The notes under the pieces were generated by a model, which had not been told where the DNA came from, ran no database searches, and saw only the letters and a list, made by a program, of their open reading frames with translations. From Parasitella parasitica NRRL 2501 (lineage: Eukaryota; Fungi; Mucoromycota): a DNA stretch of 61,484 nt. The DNA lies in the NCBI GenBank assembly GCA_025201805.1, contig MU619306.1, forward strand, positions 16,772 through 78,255, in the 5' to 3' direction. A program made the position numbers and the translations under genes. This document shows positions 1 through 58,489 of the stretch, one piece after another (within the stretch, counting starts at the first letter, position 1; every line of letters begins with the position of its first letter).

Positions 1-3000
1 TAAAGAGCAAAGTATAATTCTAATAGGTACCTTGCGTATGTCTCCATATGAATCGATAGCTGATATACAGCATAATACGGGCTAAAAAACCATTTTTGTA
101 TACCTTTATTTTTGGATGAAATAAACACCACCAAAACTGAAGTATTACCTCTTTTCCTGCTTAAAGACATAACTTGCAATTACTGATGTCTTTACAAACT
201 ATCAAGCGATGGAGACACAATTTTCAGCCAAAATATTTCCCGTTTGAACTATTCTACAATATATCCAATTCTCAAACATTTCTGATGACCATGATTCGGA
301 TTCTGCGATGTTTGGACCCCAAATCTCATATTCGATTTTCAATTTTCAACTTTGGTGATCTGCCATAATGTAGGTTAGGAGATCATGATAGTGTACTTCA
401 ATTAAAGATTGGAGATTGTCCAATGATGTGTTGTTATACTTGTCGAAACAGGAGAATAAAGCCTTTTTTGTTTCAAATCAGGAAGGTTATCTGTAACACA
501 GATCTGTATGATTGGCAAACAATAAGGTATACTGTCAGATCAAAGATCAATAACCTTGTAGTATAATATTACATCGTACCCTGCTGTTAAGGATATGATG
601 TTGCTTGCAAATTATTCTTATCGATTAGTATCGACTAGTATTTTAACTAAGTCACCAAAAATTTATGTTGTTGTAAAAAGCATAAATAGCAGATGCAAAG
701 TTGAATCTTTAATAAAGTAATCTCAAGTTTTAGTATCTCGTTAATTCAACGTTTTATACTATACTTTTCTTATTTCGATCTTGCAGATCTCAACACCACA
801 GTTTAAGTATATAAAGATTCATCTACCTGGCTAGTAAATGAACTGGAGCTTTATACACCTGTCGATTTGATAATAAAACCTATACCTTTATCAAGTTGAC
901 TTTATTGTTTTTTTAATATAATTTTTTTCCGTGAATCCATATAACAATTTATATCGATTCCACACACCAACTCTTGTATGAATGTGTTTGTTGTATTATG
1001 ATTGGAGAATTTGTGTTGAATTTGGCATCAAATATGCAATCAAATTGTTTCGAAATGGGTTTTTTTGTTGGCGAACTGAATCATTCAGAACAGAAAAATG
1101 CGTTTGCTTTTTTAAATTCAGCTGCGTGCTCAATCAAAGGCTCTTGAGGTATAGCTGGTAACTTAACCGTGATAAATCAGCATGGAATCACCTCTCTTTT
1201 GAAAAATCAGTACTGAAAGATAGATCAGAATCTGTATCATATCTGAATACAATACCAATGAAAGAACACAACATACCATATAACCGTAATATTTTTAAAA
1301 TGATACTGCCCTGTATGTCGCAGATTTCTCAATTTTGGTTGCTTGTATTGAGCAGCGCAGAGACAAGAGAAACAACCCACATGTCAATTACAATACACCA
1401 TTCGATACTACAATGCATTCAAACTTGGCAGTCATAATTAGAAGTCTAGAGAAGAACTATGAGACTTGAAATAGCTGTGTTTCTCATTTTTTCCTCTTTT
1501 CGTCAAGATTTTAAATTGAAATAACTTTTCATCCAATCAACCAATTTTTAAAACATAAAAAGTATCATATTCCACAACATCAAGTCTATCTTGTCATTTA
1601 GCTTTGGTTCACCAGATTATAGTTTTTAACTTAGTTTTCTAACTTAATATTGTTTATTATATTGCATTCATTTACTGCTTACGCAAAAATACGGTCACTG
1701 GCGTATTAAAAAATTGGCTACGCCTTTTTTTTTTTTTTNNNNNNNNNNNNNNNNNNNNNNNNNNNNNNNNNNNNNNNNNNNNNNNNNNNNNNNNNNNNNN
1801 NNNNNNNNNNNNNNNNNNNNNNNNNNNNNNNNNNNNNNNNNNNNNNNNNNNNNNNNNNNNNNNNNNNNNNNNNNNNNNNNNNNNNNNNNNNNNNNNNNNN
1901 NNNNNNNNNNNNNNNNNNNNNNNNNNNNNNNNNNNNNNNNNNNNNNNNNNNNNNNNNNNNNNNNNNNNNNNNNNNNNNNNNNNNNNNNNNNNNNNNNNNN
2001 NNNNNNNNNNNNNNNNNNNNNNNNNNNNNNNNNNNNNNNNNNNNNNNNNNNNNNNNNNNNNNNNNNNNNNNNNNNNNNNNNNNNNNNNNNNNNNNNNNNN
2101 NNNNNNNNNNNNNNNNNNNNNNNNNNNNNNNNNNNNNNNNNNNNNNNNNNNNNNNNNNNNNNNNNNNNNNNNNNNNNNNNNNNNNNNNNNNNNNNNNNNN
2201 NNNNNNNNNNNNNNNNNNNNNNNNNNNNNNNNNNNNNNNNNNNNNNNNNNNNNNNNNNNNNNNNNNNNNNNNNNNNNNNNNNNNNNNNNNNNNNNNNNNN
2301 NNNNNNNNNNNNNNNNNNNNNNNNNNNNNNNNNNNNNNNNNNNNNNNNNNNNNNNNNNNNNNNNNNNNNNNNNNNNNNNNNNNNNNNNNNNNNNNNNNNN
2401 NNNNNNNNNNNNNNNNNNNNNNNNNNNNNNNNNNNNNNNNNNNNNNNNNNNNNNNNNNNNNNNNNNNNNNNNNNNNNNNNNNNNNNNNNNNNNNNNNNNN
2501 NNNNNNNNNNNNNNNNNNNNNNNNNNNNNNNNNNNNNNNNNNNNNNNNNNNNNNNNNNNNNNNNNNNNNNNNNNNNNNNNNNNNNNNNNNNNNNNNNNNN
2601 NNNNNNNNNNNNNNNNNNNNNNNNNNNNNNNNNNNNNNNNNNNNNNNNNNNNNNNNNNNNNNNNNNNNNNNNNNNNNNNNNNNNNNNNTTTTCCTTAAAA
2701 ACAATGAATATTACACACGTTTTCTAAAAGACCATAACTAACACTCTCATGCACATTTTTTATAGTACCTATTACAAGAAAACAATATACAAGATGGCGT
2801 GTTTCTAGTGCAGTAGTTCATTCAGGTATTATCATTTATTATGTTTTTGAGATGGGCCATTTTATCCGAAGCTGTGAAGTGTGGTAAGACATTTTTCGGC
2901 TATTTAGGGGGGGTATTCATTGAAATTTTACCAATTTCTATTTTTGGTTGAATTTCAAGCTCCGCACTACATCAAAACAGGGGGAAACCCTGTTTTTTTG

Positions 3001-3773
3001 TTTTTAGAATTTGGGTGCGCGTAGGGGTTATTTTAGCCAATCAAATTGCGCGATTTATAATCTTTCAGCACTTTTTTTGTGTTTATAAATAAAACGCAGC
3101 GAAGAAAACAATGATATAGTCTTACCATTTTATTAAAAAATTGGTAGTAGTACCTAAGTTGCAGCGTATAACTAGTCCACAGCTAACATAAAATATTATG
3201 TATTTTGATTTCTCATTTGTGTATTTTCATGACTTCTATCTTGTCATAGAGCAGGATTTTGTACATTGGACTATTCGCTTGATTGTACAACTTCAATGTC
3301 AATTTCGTGATATAAACTTTAATAAACGTTTCAGTTACCTTAAGGTATATTCATAAAGATCTTGCCTGTAAAATAGTCATAAATTTTTACATCTATCTTC
3401 ATCAACATCTTCATTCAATCTTTCCATCAGGTTTATTGGTCAATCATACATTACACCATCATGGTATATTTCTTTATCTTTTAGTATCCACATTTAGTAT
3501 TAATAGCGATAGTATATTCATAGCCATGAGAGGCTCCTCATCCAAACATAAAATAAAACAGCGTCTTAAAAAGTATTTTATTTTAGTGTTTCCTCAGATT
3601 TTCACACATCTGTCCTATCATCTTCGTCCAATATTACTATTCTTTAAATCAGCATTTCCTAACAACTAAAAATTTCATTATCTGAAGCTTTTAAGCGCTC
3701 AGCCGTTGCATCGATTTGCCATAATTGATATGCTGTCTTAGCTTTGTAGGTTTGTAGTTGCAAACAGGCTACA

Positions 3774-45108: not shown

Positions 45109-45723
45109 ATATATATGGTTCGCTGATACGGTGGGAGTGAAAAGAAAGTGAAATTGGCGAGTTATGTATGCGTGCACAGAAATCGATGGTCACAATAGTC
45201 AGCAAGTATTAACTGCATTAATGATTTGCTTCTTTTATAGATATCGAGGAAGAAGAGAAGCATAAATTGTTCATTTCTACCCAATCATGGATGTCAAGCT
45301 GAAATCTCTGCGCAGTCTGTTGTACGTAGATGCTAAGCAAAAAGAGCTGCGGTCAAATAAAAAAAAGCGAAGACAATGCTTACAAATCTTGGATATCCGG
45401 GATTAAAGCATGCCTTCAATTCGAATAAAAAGTCTAAATACGTACATAGGTAGCTCATACAATGCTAATATGACATGCCCATAGTCGCTCAACTCTTTTG
45501 CATTGAAAAGAGCAAATATGATAAGCTTTATTTATTAAATTAGCATTAAAAGTATATATGTAATTGAGTTTGTACATCGTAGCCCAGTTTAAGATTTTAG
45601 TTCACATTTACCATGTGTCGTGCTACAGTGAATTAGCTTGATCTGTAACAACGGCAGCGATAAAAAGTTTAAGAAGAGCGAAAGGAGCTTAGTTGAGGCA
45701 ACATTACCAATATCATGTATTTA

Positions 45724-45745
45724 GAGCATCTCCAACGGAGATGCT
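45724..45745 (+). repeat. Terminal inverted repeat (3' end relative to Fanzor); itself a 9-bp hairpin
   Basis: AGCATCTCC-AAC-GGAGATGCT perfect stem; matches 49357-49378. Confidence 0.92.
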
Positions 45746-45895
45746 AATTTTACAAAATTTCCAAAAGAAAATTGATCAGAGGGTGATACTCTCTTTTTTT
45801 TTTGGACAATTTTACTCACCTGTAATGGTGTATAGGATAAACCGAATACCCATGACGTATCAAAGAGTAATATCAATGATACATAATGCTTGCAA
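45724..45895 (-). ncRNA. Candidate Fanzor omegaRNA region
   Basis: Lies between the Fanzor stop and the element end; minus-strand stems GTATCA/TGATAC, GGGTA/TATCC, CACC-ATTACA-GGTG plus the terminal TIR hairpin; identity inferred from position. Confidence 0.5.
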
Positions 45896-48456
45896 TTATT
45901 CTTTTGATCCAGAACGCTGGAATGGTGAAAGACGAGCGTCATTGTTTCTTGCTGCATGTAAAAATATGTTCAGGATGTTTTTTGCAGCCATTATATCGCG
46001 ATTCCAAATAATATTACAAGCGGTTTCTTGACACTGTAATACAGAATGTACTCTTCGCTTTGCTGATCGTTGCACAACGTTTTCAACATTTCTTTTTTTG
46101 CAGTTGTTGCTGACTTGACTGGTGAGGTATTCGTCTACCATTTGGACTGTAACGCCACAATTTTCTTCGCATTTTTGAAGAGCTTTTATGATAGTCTTTG
46201 TGGGTCCAAGTCTTTTGCCTCTCATTGTAGGTAAAAATCTTCCATTTCCATAGGCAATGATGGTTTTATTTGCCTTTTCTCGTTGTTGTCTTCACATTGG
46301 TGAACGCACCCGTACAATATTTGATGCTATCATGAGGAAACATCTTGACTATTTCGCTGAAGGCTTTTTGCTTCTTTCTATAACATCTAAACTTTAATTT
46401 TGAAGACCTAGTCCATTTGGTTAACACATTTTTAAAATATGTACAAGAGTTTGCTACACTTACCAAAGGCCTCTGTTATAAAATTCATACATTGTATCGT
46501 AGGATTGTATATACGCTTTCTGCAAGCAATCAAGAATTTTGAAACTTCTCCGGTTTTTAATGAATCCAGTTCTGTTATCATTCTATGAGTGTTTGTGTGC
46601 TTCGCTTGATGAATCTTTCGAATGTGAGCTGCATCATTAAACCCACACAAGTGATAATACTCCTTTTGACCAAGTGATCCCACTCTACCAGCTTGGTCAA
46701 CTATAGTAAAAACCGTGCTAATTCCAGAGTCTACCGCCCACACTTGGCACCCATTGTCAATATCTGTTTTCAGGTCAGATGGCTTTACGGGAAGAGAACC
46801 TTTCTTCTTTTTTGCTGTAATTCTTGAGAAGAGAAAAGAAACTGAATAACCATCCGTGTAGATAACATTCCTACTATAACTTGATAAGTTCCAAGGCATT
46901 AGTAAATTAAAACTATTTGAACTTACTTAAAGATCTTCTTTCCATTGTAGAGCTTATCCCTGGTTTTAAATCCAATTTTAGAAAAATCAAAAAGTTTGTA
47001 ATAAAACGCAGACAGTTGCTCTTCATTTTTAGTTCCTGAAGTAGTATAACCATCAACAGAAACTCTGACCAGTCTCCAGAAAGCTTGTGCGTCAATCTGA
47101 ATTGATTTTCTTTGCGTTGAATACAATGGTAACAGAGAGAAAAAGCGATACCACGTTTATCGGTGTATTTTGTGGAGCAAAATGTTTCATCCTTTATCCT
47201 TGATTTCAAAGTGCTTACGAAAGTTGACACCATTGGTTTGTGTTCTTGAATACTTTGAAGCTTCTTTCCAAAAATGAGAGACTCGTTACTGTTAATCGAA
47301 CTCACAACCGCTTCTTTCAATGATTCAAATTTTCGTCTATTCAACGATGCCGCAAACTGTAGCTCCTTTAACTTTCGATGAACGTATGCTTTGGAAGCAA
47401 CGGTTTCGGCAATTTCCTCAGTTAGATGTACTTTTTTTTCAACTTCTTTCTGCAGGGAAAATAAAGTTTCGGGGTCGCAGTCTACTTCTTGATACTGACT
47501 CCATAGATCCTTAATCTTTTGAACGATTTTATCAAGTGCACCGGTTCTTTCTACGGAATTTGGCCATCTTGATTTTTCTTTAACCTTTGGCCATATATGT
47601 AATGAGCAAGTAATTTTCTCTGGCTAGCCGTTAAATTACGACAATAGAATTCTGAAATCCTGTGGGTGAGTGTTTCCAGAAAAAACGTATGCTTCTTCTT
47701 TCATGATTTTCACAAACATGATATCGGATAAGGGTTTCATACTGCTTGGCAGAAATGGAAAGAATAGTCGCATAACCAATAGACTTAAATGCTTTTAAAA
47801 TTCGCTCGTCAATCTCGCACGCATTTTGAACTCTTCAAAATATTGACGGATGAACTCAGGAGCCCTACTCCCATTACCTGCTAAGGTAGAAAATATAGCA
47901 TAAACAAAATCTTGACTAATGATTGGCGTATCTTCATTGGCATCTGCACATTTCAGAATGATAAAGTTTGCAAATATGAGCCTATATAGATAATTTTCAT
48001 AGCGTAATCCACCAAGTTGCCAATTGATTTCATGAATGTTGTATTTGTGCATGTGGTTTTAAGTGAAGACTTGATGGTGAAAGCTTCTGTCTTTTCGTCA
48101 TCATTGTGTTGAACCACCTTCTTTTCTTTTCGATGTGGACAGAGTTTACTGGTAGACCTTGCATGATCTGTCTGTTTACGTGAAGGACACAGCATTGGTT
48201 TGTTGGATTTGTTTTGCTTCTTGAACTCCTCTAAAGCAACTTTTTTGTCTTCTTTCTGTTGGACTTTCTTTGATAAAGTAGGAGTTTTGCTGGAAGAAGA
48301 ACCTATATCATTAAATAAGCTAGCAGTCTTTTCTATTGAGCTAGAAGCCTTTGATGTTGAACTCGAAATATCGTTGGTGGTGGGAATACCTGGTGTTGTC
48401 AAATCAGCCTCCTCTTCTTGGTGATTCAAATCTGCACCTAAAATATAGTAAGACAA
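45896..48456 (-). pseudogene. Fanzor1 (TnpB-like RNA-guided RuvC endonuclease), frameshifted
   Basis: RuvC-I VWAVDSG, IAYGNG, RuvC-II VDEYLTSQ, zinc finger (S)NNC...CQETAC, RuvC-III WNRDIMAAKNI; YTDGYSVSFLF and EYYHLCGF; N-terminal C...H-ARSTSKLCP knuckle; split across at least six frames. Confidence 0.9.
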
Positions 48457-49356
48457 ATATTCTTTTCGCGATGAATGTGTTAGATATTTACTTCTTATAG
48501 CTTTCTTTCTTTCCTGTCCGGTGAATTGTCTTTATGTTTACACTTCATATATGTGTGAGGAGTAAATTAAGCAAAGAAAAAGAAGAAATGAACTTACAAC
48601 ATTCAGTGATGTATTCTGCTGAATTTGATAAATTAGGCTCAATACAAAATCTCAAAGTGCATTACGATCAAAACAGTGGATACTCAAAAAAAAAAAAAGA
48701 GAGTATAGTGTATAAAGTTTAACTAACTATACGAACTTTATTAGCATTTTCTAAAATGGCCAGTATATTTCTGTTCTGAATGCTCATATTAATGTTAGAA
48801 GTGTGGGGTTTATAGTATGAGATATATAAGTGTGGATTGAATAAAGTAGTGAGCACCAGCTCCTGTTTTGAAAGTAGAATGACTTTGCATTACGAAGAAA
48901 AGATAAGAGCAAAAGAGTAAAAGAGAATACAATGGACTCAAGAACCAAGGGAGTAATTCAAAGAACTTCAGAAACAAAAAAGCAAGGTAACAGTAAGCAA
49001 GCAGGGACGATTACACCAGTGAAAGATTTATAAGTAAAATAAAAGCCAAAGTTGAAGGTAATAAATAACTAATGATTTTATTTGAATTTAAAATAATTGA
49101 GGATGAGGATATTTATACTAGTTTCGAATAAAGTTATTTTTGATAGAGAAAGCTTAAATCTTGAAATTAGGTATTATGCAAGAAAAAAAGTGTGGAGAAA
49201 CTTAATAATGTCATATGAACTGACAGTGATCTATTGATTTTGCGTTATTTGAACTCAATAAATGTTTATCGTCTCAAATTAGCACTTCCAAAAAAGCAGA
49301 CAAAAATTTTTCGGGTTATTAAAAAAAAAGCGGGTGCTTTAAATGGCTTTTTGTTC

Positions 49357-49378
49357 AGCGTCTCCGTTGGAGATGCTC
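49357..49378 (-). repeat. Terminal inverted repeat (5' end relative to Fanzor)
   Basis: AGCGTCTCCGTTGGAGATGCTC followed by TTA. Confidence 0.92.
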
Positions 49379-50341
49379 TTAATTTTTTTTTTATACATAC
49401 AGGTTGGTCTTAACACACAATTTTTTATATTTTAAGAAACCATAGTAACTAATCAAAATAATCTGCATACCGTTTCCATGACAACGATCAATTAACCCGA
49501 AATTGTGGCATATTGGATCTTCTTTTTTGCGGGGTAAGACTTTAGACGAACTGGTAGACCATGATGGCACACCAGATCAAGAATTCAACCTAGATTAAAA
49601 TTAAGCTTTTTTGCGAACGTAAGCCATAGCGTGCTCTTTTAAAACCCTCAAATAAATACTGCAGTTCAAATACCATTTACATGTCATTATATGTCTTTAT
49701 ACAGTCTATAGTATGAATTGTTGTTATTATTTTATGGTTACATACGTATTCCTTTTTTTAATCTCCAAAAAGAAATTTTAAAGAATAACCAAAATGAGTT
49801 TTGGTAAGTCGGTTACCTGAATATGGTAATTTGGGATGAATGGATCGGGTGAAAAAAAGAAAGGGGAACCTTATTAATCTTTCTTGTATACATGAAACTC
49901 ATTTTTTGAGCTACCGGTCAGGCACTATATACTACTCGTATGAAAAACCATACAGTCTCTACCTATTATGTTGTAATAGAAATAAAATGGGCTTACTAAG
50001 ACTAGACAGAAAGTAGTTTGTCTTTTTTTATTTTTATTATTTGCCATCTACAGAAGTTCTCTTTAAACAGTGAATAATTCATTTCAAATCAATTGATTTA
50101 GCTGAAATAAACCAGATGCCAACAGCTTGTTATTTCCTTATAACATCATGTGAATCATAATATCCCGAAAATAAAACAACCCTTTTTTGCTATACATACA
50201 AGATAAATAGACTTCTGTGTTACAAGATGTGTTGTGTTTCCATGTTTTTATTTTAAAAGAAAAGACAAAAAAAACTTGATTTTCATCTTTCTTTCCTCTT
50301 TTTTTCTCTCTCTGGCTTTTCCATTTTGCTTAAACATATCA

Positions 50342-56849: not shown

Positions 56850-58489
56850 ATGCAAGAAGAAGAAACTAAAAAAATGAATTGTGAAGATAGAGGTGTAGGT
56901 ACTATTATGGATGGCTATACAACAACAGATCAAATAGCTAGCATCACTGCTTACTATTTTAATCAAAAAACAATCAAAGATTTGCGCAATTCGCTCTCAT
57001 TCTTGTTGTCTCATTTTTGTCTTTTACGTGGTGAATCTGCTAGAAAAGCAGAGCTACCTGACTTACAAGTAGTCAATATCGAAGGTGAAGGTTCAGGTCG
57101 TTGCCCTGCAATGGTACTTNNNNNNNNNNNNNNNNNNNNNNNNNNNNNNNNNNNNNNNNNNNNNNNNNNNNNNNNNNNNNNNNNNNNNNNNNNNNNNNNN
57201 NNNNNNNNNNNNNNNNNNNNNNNNNNNNNNNNNNNNNNNNNNNNNNNNNNNNNNNNNNNNNNNNNNNNNNNNNNNNNNNNNNNNNNNNNNNNNNNNNNNN
57301 NNNNNNNNNNNNNNNNNNNNNNNNNNNNNNNNNNNNNNNNNNNNNNNNNNNNNNNNNNNNNNNNNNNNNNNNNNNNNNNNNNNNNNNNNNNNNNNNNNNN
57401 NNNNNNNNNNNNNNNNNNNNNNNNNNNNNNNNNNNNNNNNNNNNNNNNNNNNNNNNNNNNNNNNNNNNNNNNNNNNNNNNNNNNNNNNNNNNNNNNNNNN
57501 NNNNNNNNNNNNNNNNNNNNNNNNNNNNNNNNNNNNNNNNNNNNNNNNNNNNNNNNNNNNNNNNNNNNNNNNNNNNNNNNNNNNNNNNNNNNNNNNNNNN
57601 NNNNNNNNNNNNNNNNNNNNNNNNNNNNNNNNNNNNNNNNNNNNNNNNNNNNNNNNNNNNNNNNNNNNNNNNNNNNNNNNNNNNNNNNNNNNNNNNNNNN
57701 NNNNNNNNNNNNNNNNNNNNNNNNNNNNNNNNNNNNNNNNNNNNNNNNNNNNNNNNNNNNNNNNNNNNNNNNNNNNNNNNNNNNNNNNNNNNNNNNNNNN
57801 NNNNNNNNNNNNNNNNNNNNNNNNNNNNNNNNNNNNNNNNNNNNNNNNNNNNNNNNNNNNNNNNNNNNNNNNNNNNNNNNNNNNNNNNNNNNNNNNNNNN
57901 NNNNNNNNNNNNNNNNNNNNNNNNNNNNNNNNNNNNNNNNNNNNNNNNNNNNNNNNNNNNNNNNNNNNNNNNNNNNNNNNNNNNNNNNNNNNNNNNNNNN
58001 NNNNACATCTCTGACATTTCAACTGGAAGAGCACCATTGCAAATAAATATTGAATGGCCACAACAAGGTTCTAGTAGTAGTATTCTACCTAGCGCATCTA
58101 TACGAACGTTTAACACTGATACTACTGCAAAAACTACTACTGAAGTTCTGTCAACCACACAAAAAACGCCTAGACCTTCATCTTCTGCATCTTACAGGTT
58201 GAGTACAAATGTTTATACATTGACCGATTTGTACAGGGAATGGACTGAAGGTTTAGGTGGTAATCATTCAGTAGTTTATATGAATGCAAATCATCCAGGT
58301 TGGTACTCTAGCCACAAAAGTTTCTACATGAGAAGACGCAAAATCATCAAGGCTTGCGAAGATTATGCTGCTGTTGAAGGGATAACTGTCTTGGATGCTG
58401 TTAGAAGAGCAGAAATGCTGCGAGTTAGAAACAAAAAATCATTAGATTACCTTTCAAAAAATAGTGATTTAATTTTTACATTACTCTAA
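56850..58489 (+). mobile_element. Crypton (tyrosine-recombinase DNA transposon, CryptonF-like), 5'-truncated and spanning an assembly gap
   Basis: EDRGVGTIMDGY...FLLSHFCLLRGESARKAELPDL (Ndc10-II/YR domain with catalytic R); after the gap a GCR1_C-like domain YRLSTNVYTLTDLYREWTEGLGG...W...FYMRRRKII. Confidence 0.85.

Follow-up and report, generated by a model that had tools for sequence, protein, structure and literature searches.

A dead transposon of probable PIF/Harbinger type with a Fanzor1-like nuclease gene in Parasitella parasitica

The window analysed here, i.e., the whole stretch of 61,484 nt from contig MU619306.1 of Parasitella parasitica NRRL 2501 (all coordinates are positions in it), contains a transposon unit of 3655 bp at 45724-49378, with TTA directly outside both ends. 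The unit is bounded by terminal inverted repeats (TIRs) that are identical at 21 of 22 positions, and its minus strand holds a gene resembling Fanzor1 and TnpB, i.e., RNA-guided nucleases. Contigs from several runs were aligned to the window, among them X4, a DNA run, and X7, taken for an RNA run only by guess. The unit is made up as follows (element positions count from its left end; MITEs are miniature inverted-repeat transposable elements).

45721..45723: target-site duplication, left copy (TTA)
45724..45745: TIR at the putative guide-RNA end, 22 bp, itself a 9-bp hairpin
45744..45819, minus strand: GT-AG intron of 76 nt in the 3' untranslated/guide region (element 21-96), its joint (45743>45820) seen in 2 X7 contigs
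45820..45895, minus strand: putative scaffold of the omega-RNA, following the stop codon, with a predicted conserved hairpin at 45856-45883
45896..46407, minus strand: last coding exon, with the RuvC-II glutamate, the C4 zinc finger (first Cys replaced by Ser, 46109-46111), the RuvC-III aspartate, the stop codon (45896-45898) and a frameshift near 46280
46408..46463, minus strand: coding GT-AG intron of 56 nt (GTAAGT...CTAG), joint in an X7 contig
46464..46870, minus strand: exon with the RuvC-I aspartate (VDSG, against VDPG in the family) and a private 2-bp insertion at 46508
46871..46926, minus strand: coding GT-AG intron of 56 nt (GTAAGT...GTAG), joint in an X7 contig, the frame continuing across the joint
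46927..48437, minus strand: N-terminal half of the Fanzor gene, with 1-base deletions at 47975, 47823 and 47679 and frameshifts near 47600 and 47130
48438..49014, minus strand: 5' leader/promoter region, possibly with a 5' intron, holding the peak of X7 contig depth (48773-48923) and common to deletion derivatives (element 2986-3291)
49015..49287: segment of 273 bp absent from nearly all other copies, part of it (element 3481-3547) common to the copy C71
49357..49378: TIR at the element's 5' end, one position mismatched; MITEs have ca. 110 bp of this end in common with it
49379..49381: target-site duplication, right copy (TTA)

Each 22-bp TIR is a palindrome in its own right (a single base, then two 9-bp stem arms around a loop of 3 nt), and the loops of the two ends have opposite orientations, which makes the ends true inverted repeats. 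When the host genome (32.8 Mb in 450 contigs, with many N gaps inside repeats) was searched with the 22-mer at up to 3 mismatches, 65 matches were obtained against 0 for a reversed control pattern, which excludes chance. The initial annotation of this DNA had described the unit with the same length, TIRs and flanking TTA, and had proposed that the TIR be looked for in the genome; the window sequence and the 65 copies bear it out.

With the whole element as query, 79 matching pieces were found in the genome, 20 loci were retrieved and both ends are visible in 19. These two-ended copies range from 586 to 3655 bp, the window copy being the longest, and 13 of the 19 are flanked by perfect TTA/TTA or TAA/TAA duplications. 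TTA or TAA (TWA) abuts 40 of the 45 distinct ends, and the duplication noticed at the window copy thus holds at the level of the family; AT is found just outside it at 17 of the 45 ends, suggesting AT-TWA-AT as the insertion target. Most copies are internal-deletion derivatives falling into subfamilies with common breakpoints, in which element positions 1-553 are joined to 1986-3291, 1-1226 to 2986-3291, 1-1104 to 2386-3291 or 1-674 to 2071-3291. The common breakpoints imply that the subfamilies were amplified after deletion, which points to mobilisation in trans. The elements of ca. 600 bp share only ca. 40 bp of the left end and ca. 110 bp of the right end and are MITEs of the Fanzor-element family. 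The copies share 86-93% identity with the window copy, from which we conclude that the family is old. Many of them are interrupted by runs of N, the window has an assembly gap of this kind at 57118-58000, and the "open frames" of ca. 1000 aa that appeared in genome searches are artefacts of such gaps.

The exons of the gene were searched one by one, the joined sequence being used only for translation and fold. The minus-strand piece 45896-46225 matches Pfam PF07282 (Cas12f1-like TNB) with 36.9 bits against a cut-off of 26.3 (E 4e-9) and, in PDB, the Fanzor1 of Guillardia theta (GtFz1, E 0.004); a paralog in the same genome matches GtFz1 (E 9e-5) and SpuFz1 (0.15), and PpFz1 was matched in PDB by neither gene. 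The three RuvC motifs are present, i.e., AVDSG at about 46723-46737 (aspartate of RuvC-I at 46729-46731), DEYLTSQ (glutamate of RuvC-II at 46130-46132, six residues before the first zinc-finger Cys position) and WNRD (aspartate of RuvC-III at 45995-45997), the last following a C4 finger that reads CxxC...CxxxxC in the family. A glutamate six residues before the zinc finger has been described for Fanzor (PMC13565253). The RuvC-I piece (46432-46899) found 64 protein matches among 1.84 billion representatives, including two long homologs (P0041, P0049) that carry PF07282 downstream of the RuvC-I match. Alone, this piece had no match in Pfam or PDB, P0041 had none in PDB, and the N-terminal half (46927..48437) had none in Pfam. 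Judged by its sequence, the gene is Fanzor1/TnpB-like, as the initial annotation had read it from the motifs, and the profile match lies above the gathering score; we favour Fanzor1 over Fanzor2 on account of the setting in a fungal transposon with TIRs.

Frameshifts had at first been held responsible for the fragmented state of the gene, and this is only partly so. X7 contigs skip three GT-AG intervals on the gene strand (46871-46926, 46408-46463 and 45744-45819) and X4 contigs skip none, so that two of the fragment boundaries, at the first and second of these intervals, are introns. Once the introns are removed, about seven real frameshifts remain (47975, 47823, 47679, ca. 47600, ca. 47130, 46508 and ca. 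46280), and the bases missing at the N-terminal deletions are present in other copies. The change of DPG to DSG (46728) and the loss of the zinc-finger Cys to Ser (46111) are private to the window copy, other copies reading DPG and Cys, in agreement with the initial annotation. With about seven frameshifts and two substituted key residues the window copy is dead. X7 contigs are free of four of its frameshifts, and better Fanzor copies may therefore exist in the assembly gaps.

The window copy is devoid of a transposase. Elsewhere in the genome, a copy of 1859 bp with both family TIRs (C71, L047) contains three open reading frame (ORF) fragments that match PF04827 (Plant_tran; E 6e-22, 6e-21 and 5e-8). 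At C98 (L086), a PF04827 transposase fragment (E 4e-22) and a second ORF of 141 aa stand directly beside the last part of the Fanzor gene; the Fanzor-tail end of this locus aligns to the family terminus, and the TIR 22-mer has no match there at up to 5 mismatches. At C32 (L087), TTA precedes a family TIR, after which come MITE-like sequence, a transposase that matches the fragment at C71 more weakly, and the second ORF, with no Fanzor tail. The loci at which the transposase and the 141-aa second ORF occur side by side are C98, C32, C87 and C49. The 3-bp TTA/TAA duplications, the short TIRs and the PF04827 fragments within the TIR-bounded C71 copy support the assignment of the element to PIF/Harbinger, the class first suggested for it. 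A window copy without transposase, together with the amplified deletion subfamilies, would fit mobilisation in trans; of the transposase-bearing partners expected on this account, remnants with PF04827 were recovered (C71, C98), an intact one was not.

Seven loci with PF13359 were considered as transposase partners and rejected: they form two other Harbinger-type families (L032/33/34/36 and L035/37) without these TIRs, without convincing repeats of their own and without DNA similarity to the Fanzor element. The L035/37 family extends into the window itself, with a transposase fragment that matches PF13359 (59983-60525, minus strand, 30.7 bits); it is 95-99% identical to C144 (L035), where the gene is in two open exons and the ends are unrelated to the Fanzor element.

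Membership of another superfamily, e.g., Tc1/mariner, could be read from two loci in which family sequence meets such an element, namely the C2 copy with its DDE_3 fragments and the C89 MITE with a complete Tc1-type element. However, the C89 Tc1 has its own repeats and TA duplication and is hence nested, the C2 fragment comes from a separate family whose own loci lack these TIRs, the flanks of the present family fit a 3-bp TWA duplication and not TA, and the Plant_tran matches refute the idea, which we regard as extremely improbable. Neither locus provides a transposase of the family: the C2 copy is not a transposase-Fanzor fusion, nor is the C89 element a transposase-bearing MITE. In the C2 copy (L040 1072-2276; G000:C2:172071-173275), Fanzor codons 1-88 run in frame into the Tc1/mariner DDE_3 fragment, a natural chimera that probably arose during repair. 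The C89 locus (L083 291-2536; G000:C89) is a family MITE with perfect TAA duplications, and the transposase of the Tc1/mariner element of ca. 1.7 kb nested in it is in two long ORFs of 252 aa (DDE motifs) and 135 aa (N-terminal). Open-frame Tc1/mariner transposases also occur as an inverted pair ca. 6 kb apart (G000:C74:94141-94788 and 100870-101517), and similar pairs exist elsewhere in the genome.

The same loci bear on how nuclease gene and transposon came together. If an independent Fanzor transposon with ends of its own had inserted into a Harbinger MITE, inner ends would be expected, and an 18-bp perfect inverted repeat (45786-45803 and 48689-48706) does bracket the Fanzor gene inside the element; paralogous Fanzor families of the same genome moreover sit in other contexts. 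The inner repeat, however, is a low-complexity A/T run that is not conserved in other copies and is probably due to chance, and the Fanzor module is without a flanking duplication. The Fanzor element contains none of the MITE interior and is consequently not a MITE plus an insert. All two-ended Fanzor-derived copies use the outer TIRs; the deletion derivatives retain the outer ends on both sides, and inner ends were not found. We therefore give a nested insertion very little credence.

Another history would start from an autonomous composite Harbinger ancestor with transposase, second ORF and full Fanzor gene, from which the window copy lost its transposase genes, with no capture by a non-autonomous element. 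C98 and C71 speak for it, the transposase (at C98 also the second ORF) being directly beside the last Fanzor part with the same end and a shared junction at element ca. 326, as do the 67 bp (element 3481-3547) that the window copy has in common with the C71 copy. Yet none of the copies seen combines a full Fanzor gene with a transposase, gap repair could equally have produced C98 and C71 as recombinants, and the C32 lineage has the same TIR without a Fanzor tail. We consider such an ancestor less likely than not.

We conclude, with a probability of roughly 0.88, that the unit is a dead, non-autonomous PIF/Harbinger transposon whose only gene encodes a Fanzor1 (TnpB-like) RNA-guided nuclease. 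Several observations weigh against this view or against parts of the model built on it. The flanks are unequal in 6 of the 19 two-ended copies (four pair a TAA with a TTA, two are degraded), and no empty site was found among the retrieved loci, which are paralogous, or in the aligned runs, where the DNA run X4 holds the occupied site and X8 gave nothing. No intact transposase of the family was found, all copies seen being broken and those of C71 and C98 being fragments with frameshifts, and the second ORF, only putatively Myb-like, has no Pfam match even at E 10. The RNA nature of X7 is guessed, its contigs may derive from other family copies, and neither an RNA 3' end nor read-through into flanking DNA was seen in them.

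The interval of 76 nt that X7 contigs skip at the left end has its acceptor AG inside the TIR, 20 nt from the end of the element, and its splice sites are kept in most aligned family copies. As the exon upstream of it likewise ends in AG, splicing would restore the terminal hairpin with all of its 9 bp. The 3' region of the gene is covered by RNA-like contigs in spliced form. The homology of the Fanzor element to the MITE and C32 ends stops at element ca. 39-46, i.e., inside this intron, which by these alignments spans the junction of Fanzor-derived and Harbinger-derived sequence. The hairpin predicted in the scaffold is kept in two paralogous Fanzor families with one compensatory change, G:C to C:G (three sequences only), and in both paralogs, L082 in the same genome and L085 in GCA_025118155.1, the hairpin is followed at the equivalent position by a GTAAGT donor.

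These two paralogous Fanzor genes (L082 2423-3020, G000:C188; L085 8200-8510) have 43-57% protein identity, with the GTAAGT a few bases on from the hairpin; the zinc finger of L082 is intact and the rest of its gene is in an assembly gap.

The life cycle that we envisage for the family begins with a PIF-type DDE transposase, supplied by related elements, that would recognise the 22-bp hairpin TIRs, as the ends, the duplications and the transposase-remnant copies suggest. It probably acts with the second small protein encoded beside the transposase gene, and it would excise the element and paste it into TTA or TAA, preferably AT-TWA-AT, duplicating 3 bp. By analogy with TnpB and the characterised Fanzor1 proteins, transcription of the Fanzor gene would run in the direction of the left end, the omega-RNA scaffold would be formed by the 3' region, and removal of the 76-nt spliceosomal intron would connect this scaffold with the terminal hairpin and the host DNA beyond it. 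With the flank as guide, the nuclease could then cut unoccupied insertion sites, which would favour re-copying of the element.

The same anatomy could also have the nuclease aimed at the family's own ends, as the 20 nt that follow the spliced scaffold are the TIR itself, and an acceptor 20 nt from the end would leave a guide of typical length. But splicing regenerates the full 9-bp hairpin, which is scaffold-like rather than a single-stranded guide, and characterised Fanzors and TnpB use non-conserved sequence beyond the element as guide (PMC13565253), so that we hold a TIR-derived guide to be improbable. A more general proposal can be made only tentatively, at somewhat less than even odds: in this Fanzor1 clade the spliceosome might assemble the guide RNA, with a conserved donor after the scaffold and an acceptor taken from the terminal sequence of the host transposon (here the Harbinger TIR). 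If this is true, the intron spans the capture junction, and a Fanzor module could enter a new superfamily with its scaffold still placed beside the new end and flank. The literature searched yielded no account of a Fanzor guide RNA that is spliced by the spliceosome, and neither Saito et al. 2023 nor Xu et al. 2024 mentions a spliceosomal intron in the guide-RNA region.

The pairing of Fanzor with Harbinger has in part been reported before, although only four of the papers searched name the two together. A Harbinger-type transposase was described by Bao and Jurka 2013 (PMC3627910) from the Fanzor1 family MCi-5 of Mucor circinelloides, which they left unclassified, and on the basis of MCi-5 a 2026 review (PMC13565253) lists Harbinger among the Fanzor hosts. 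MCi-5 and the present family are both elements of Mucorales with a Fanzor1 gene and an associated Harbinger-type transposase; in MCi-5, however, terminal repeats are not detectable and the putative duplication is of 6 bp, whereas the present family has 22-bp TIRs and 3-bp TTA/TAA duplications and shows Fanzor and transposase together only as remnants. Transposons of other types are known to carry Fanzor genes; here the Fanzor1 cargo lies in an element of canonical PIF/Harbinger type, and the whole family, including transposase-remnant copies, is visible in one genome. Like PIF/Harbinger elements and their Tourist-like MITEs, this family has 3-bp TTA/TAA duplications, short TIRs, a Plant_tran/DDE_Tnp_4 transposase, a small second ORF and MITEs made of ends only. 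It differs in carrying a gene for an RNA-guided nuclease as cargo, the putative guide RNA abutting one end, in that the TIR itself is a hairpin, and in the lack of a Myb/SANT match for the second ORF.

With GtFz1, SpuFz1 and PpFz1 (PMC10432273, PMC11423790) the gene shares the D-E-D residues of RuvC, the glutamate six residues before the C4 finger, a 3' omega-RNA (putative here), residence in transposons and eukaryotic introns, although the similarity is weak (E 0.004 to GtFz1, none to PpFz1). The putative guide RNA at a transposon end and its presumed role in homing recall IS200/IS605 TnpB and the IStrons (bioRxiv 10.1101/2023.11.20.567912), and the IStrons, in which an intron overlaps the guide RNA, are the nearest analogue; here, in contrast, the transposase is of the DDE type, the duplication is of 3 bp and the intron is spliceosomal, with GT-AG borders. 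In the Fanzor elements of Saito et al. 2023 (PMC10432273) the repeats enclosed no transposase; these authors left open the role of Fanzor for DDE-type transposons and urged further analysis of repeats and gene associations. In P. parasitica, one genome holds a Fanzor-carrying element, derivatives with only the guide-RNA end, MITEs and transposase-remnant relatives, all with one pair of ends and a TTA/TAA target, and both the relation of a nuclease target motif to the transposase insertion site and a guide RNA built by splicing are testable here. As for the window copy, it is a dead transposon of an ordinary kind, and the intron-in-TIR architecture is the part worth pursuing.

Related sequence is also present outside this genome. 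Contigs of X11, a run labelled as another organism, are ca. 95% identical to the window over 45790-48845, and GCA_025118155.1 has an internal fragment of 88% identity (L084 5918-7040) between host genes; identities of this order in other moulds may reflect recent transfer between moulds.

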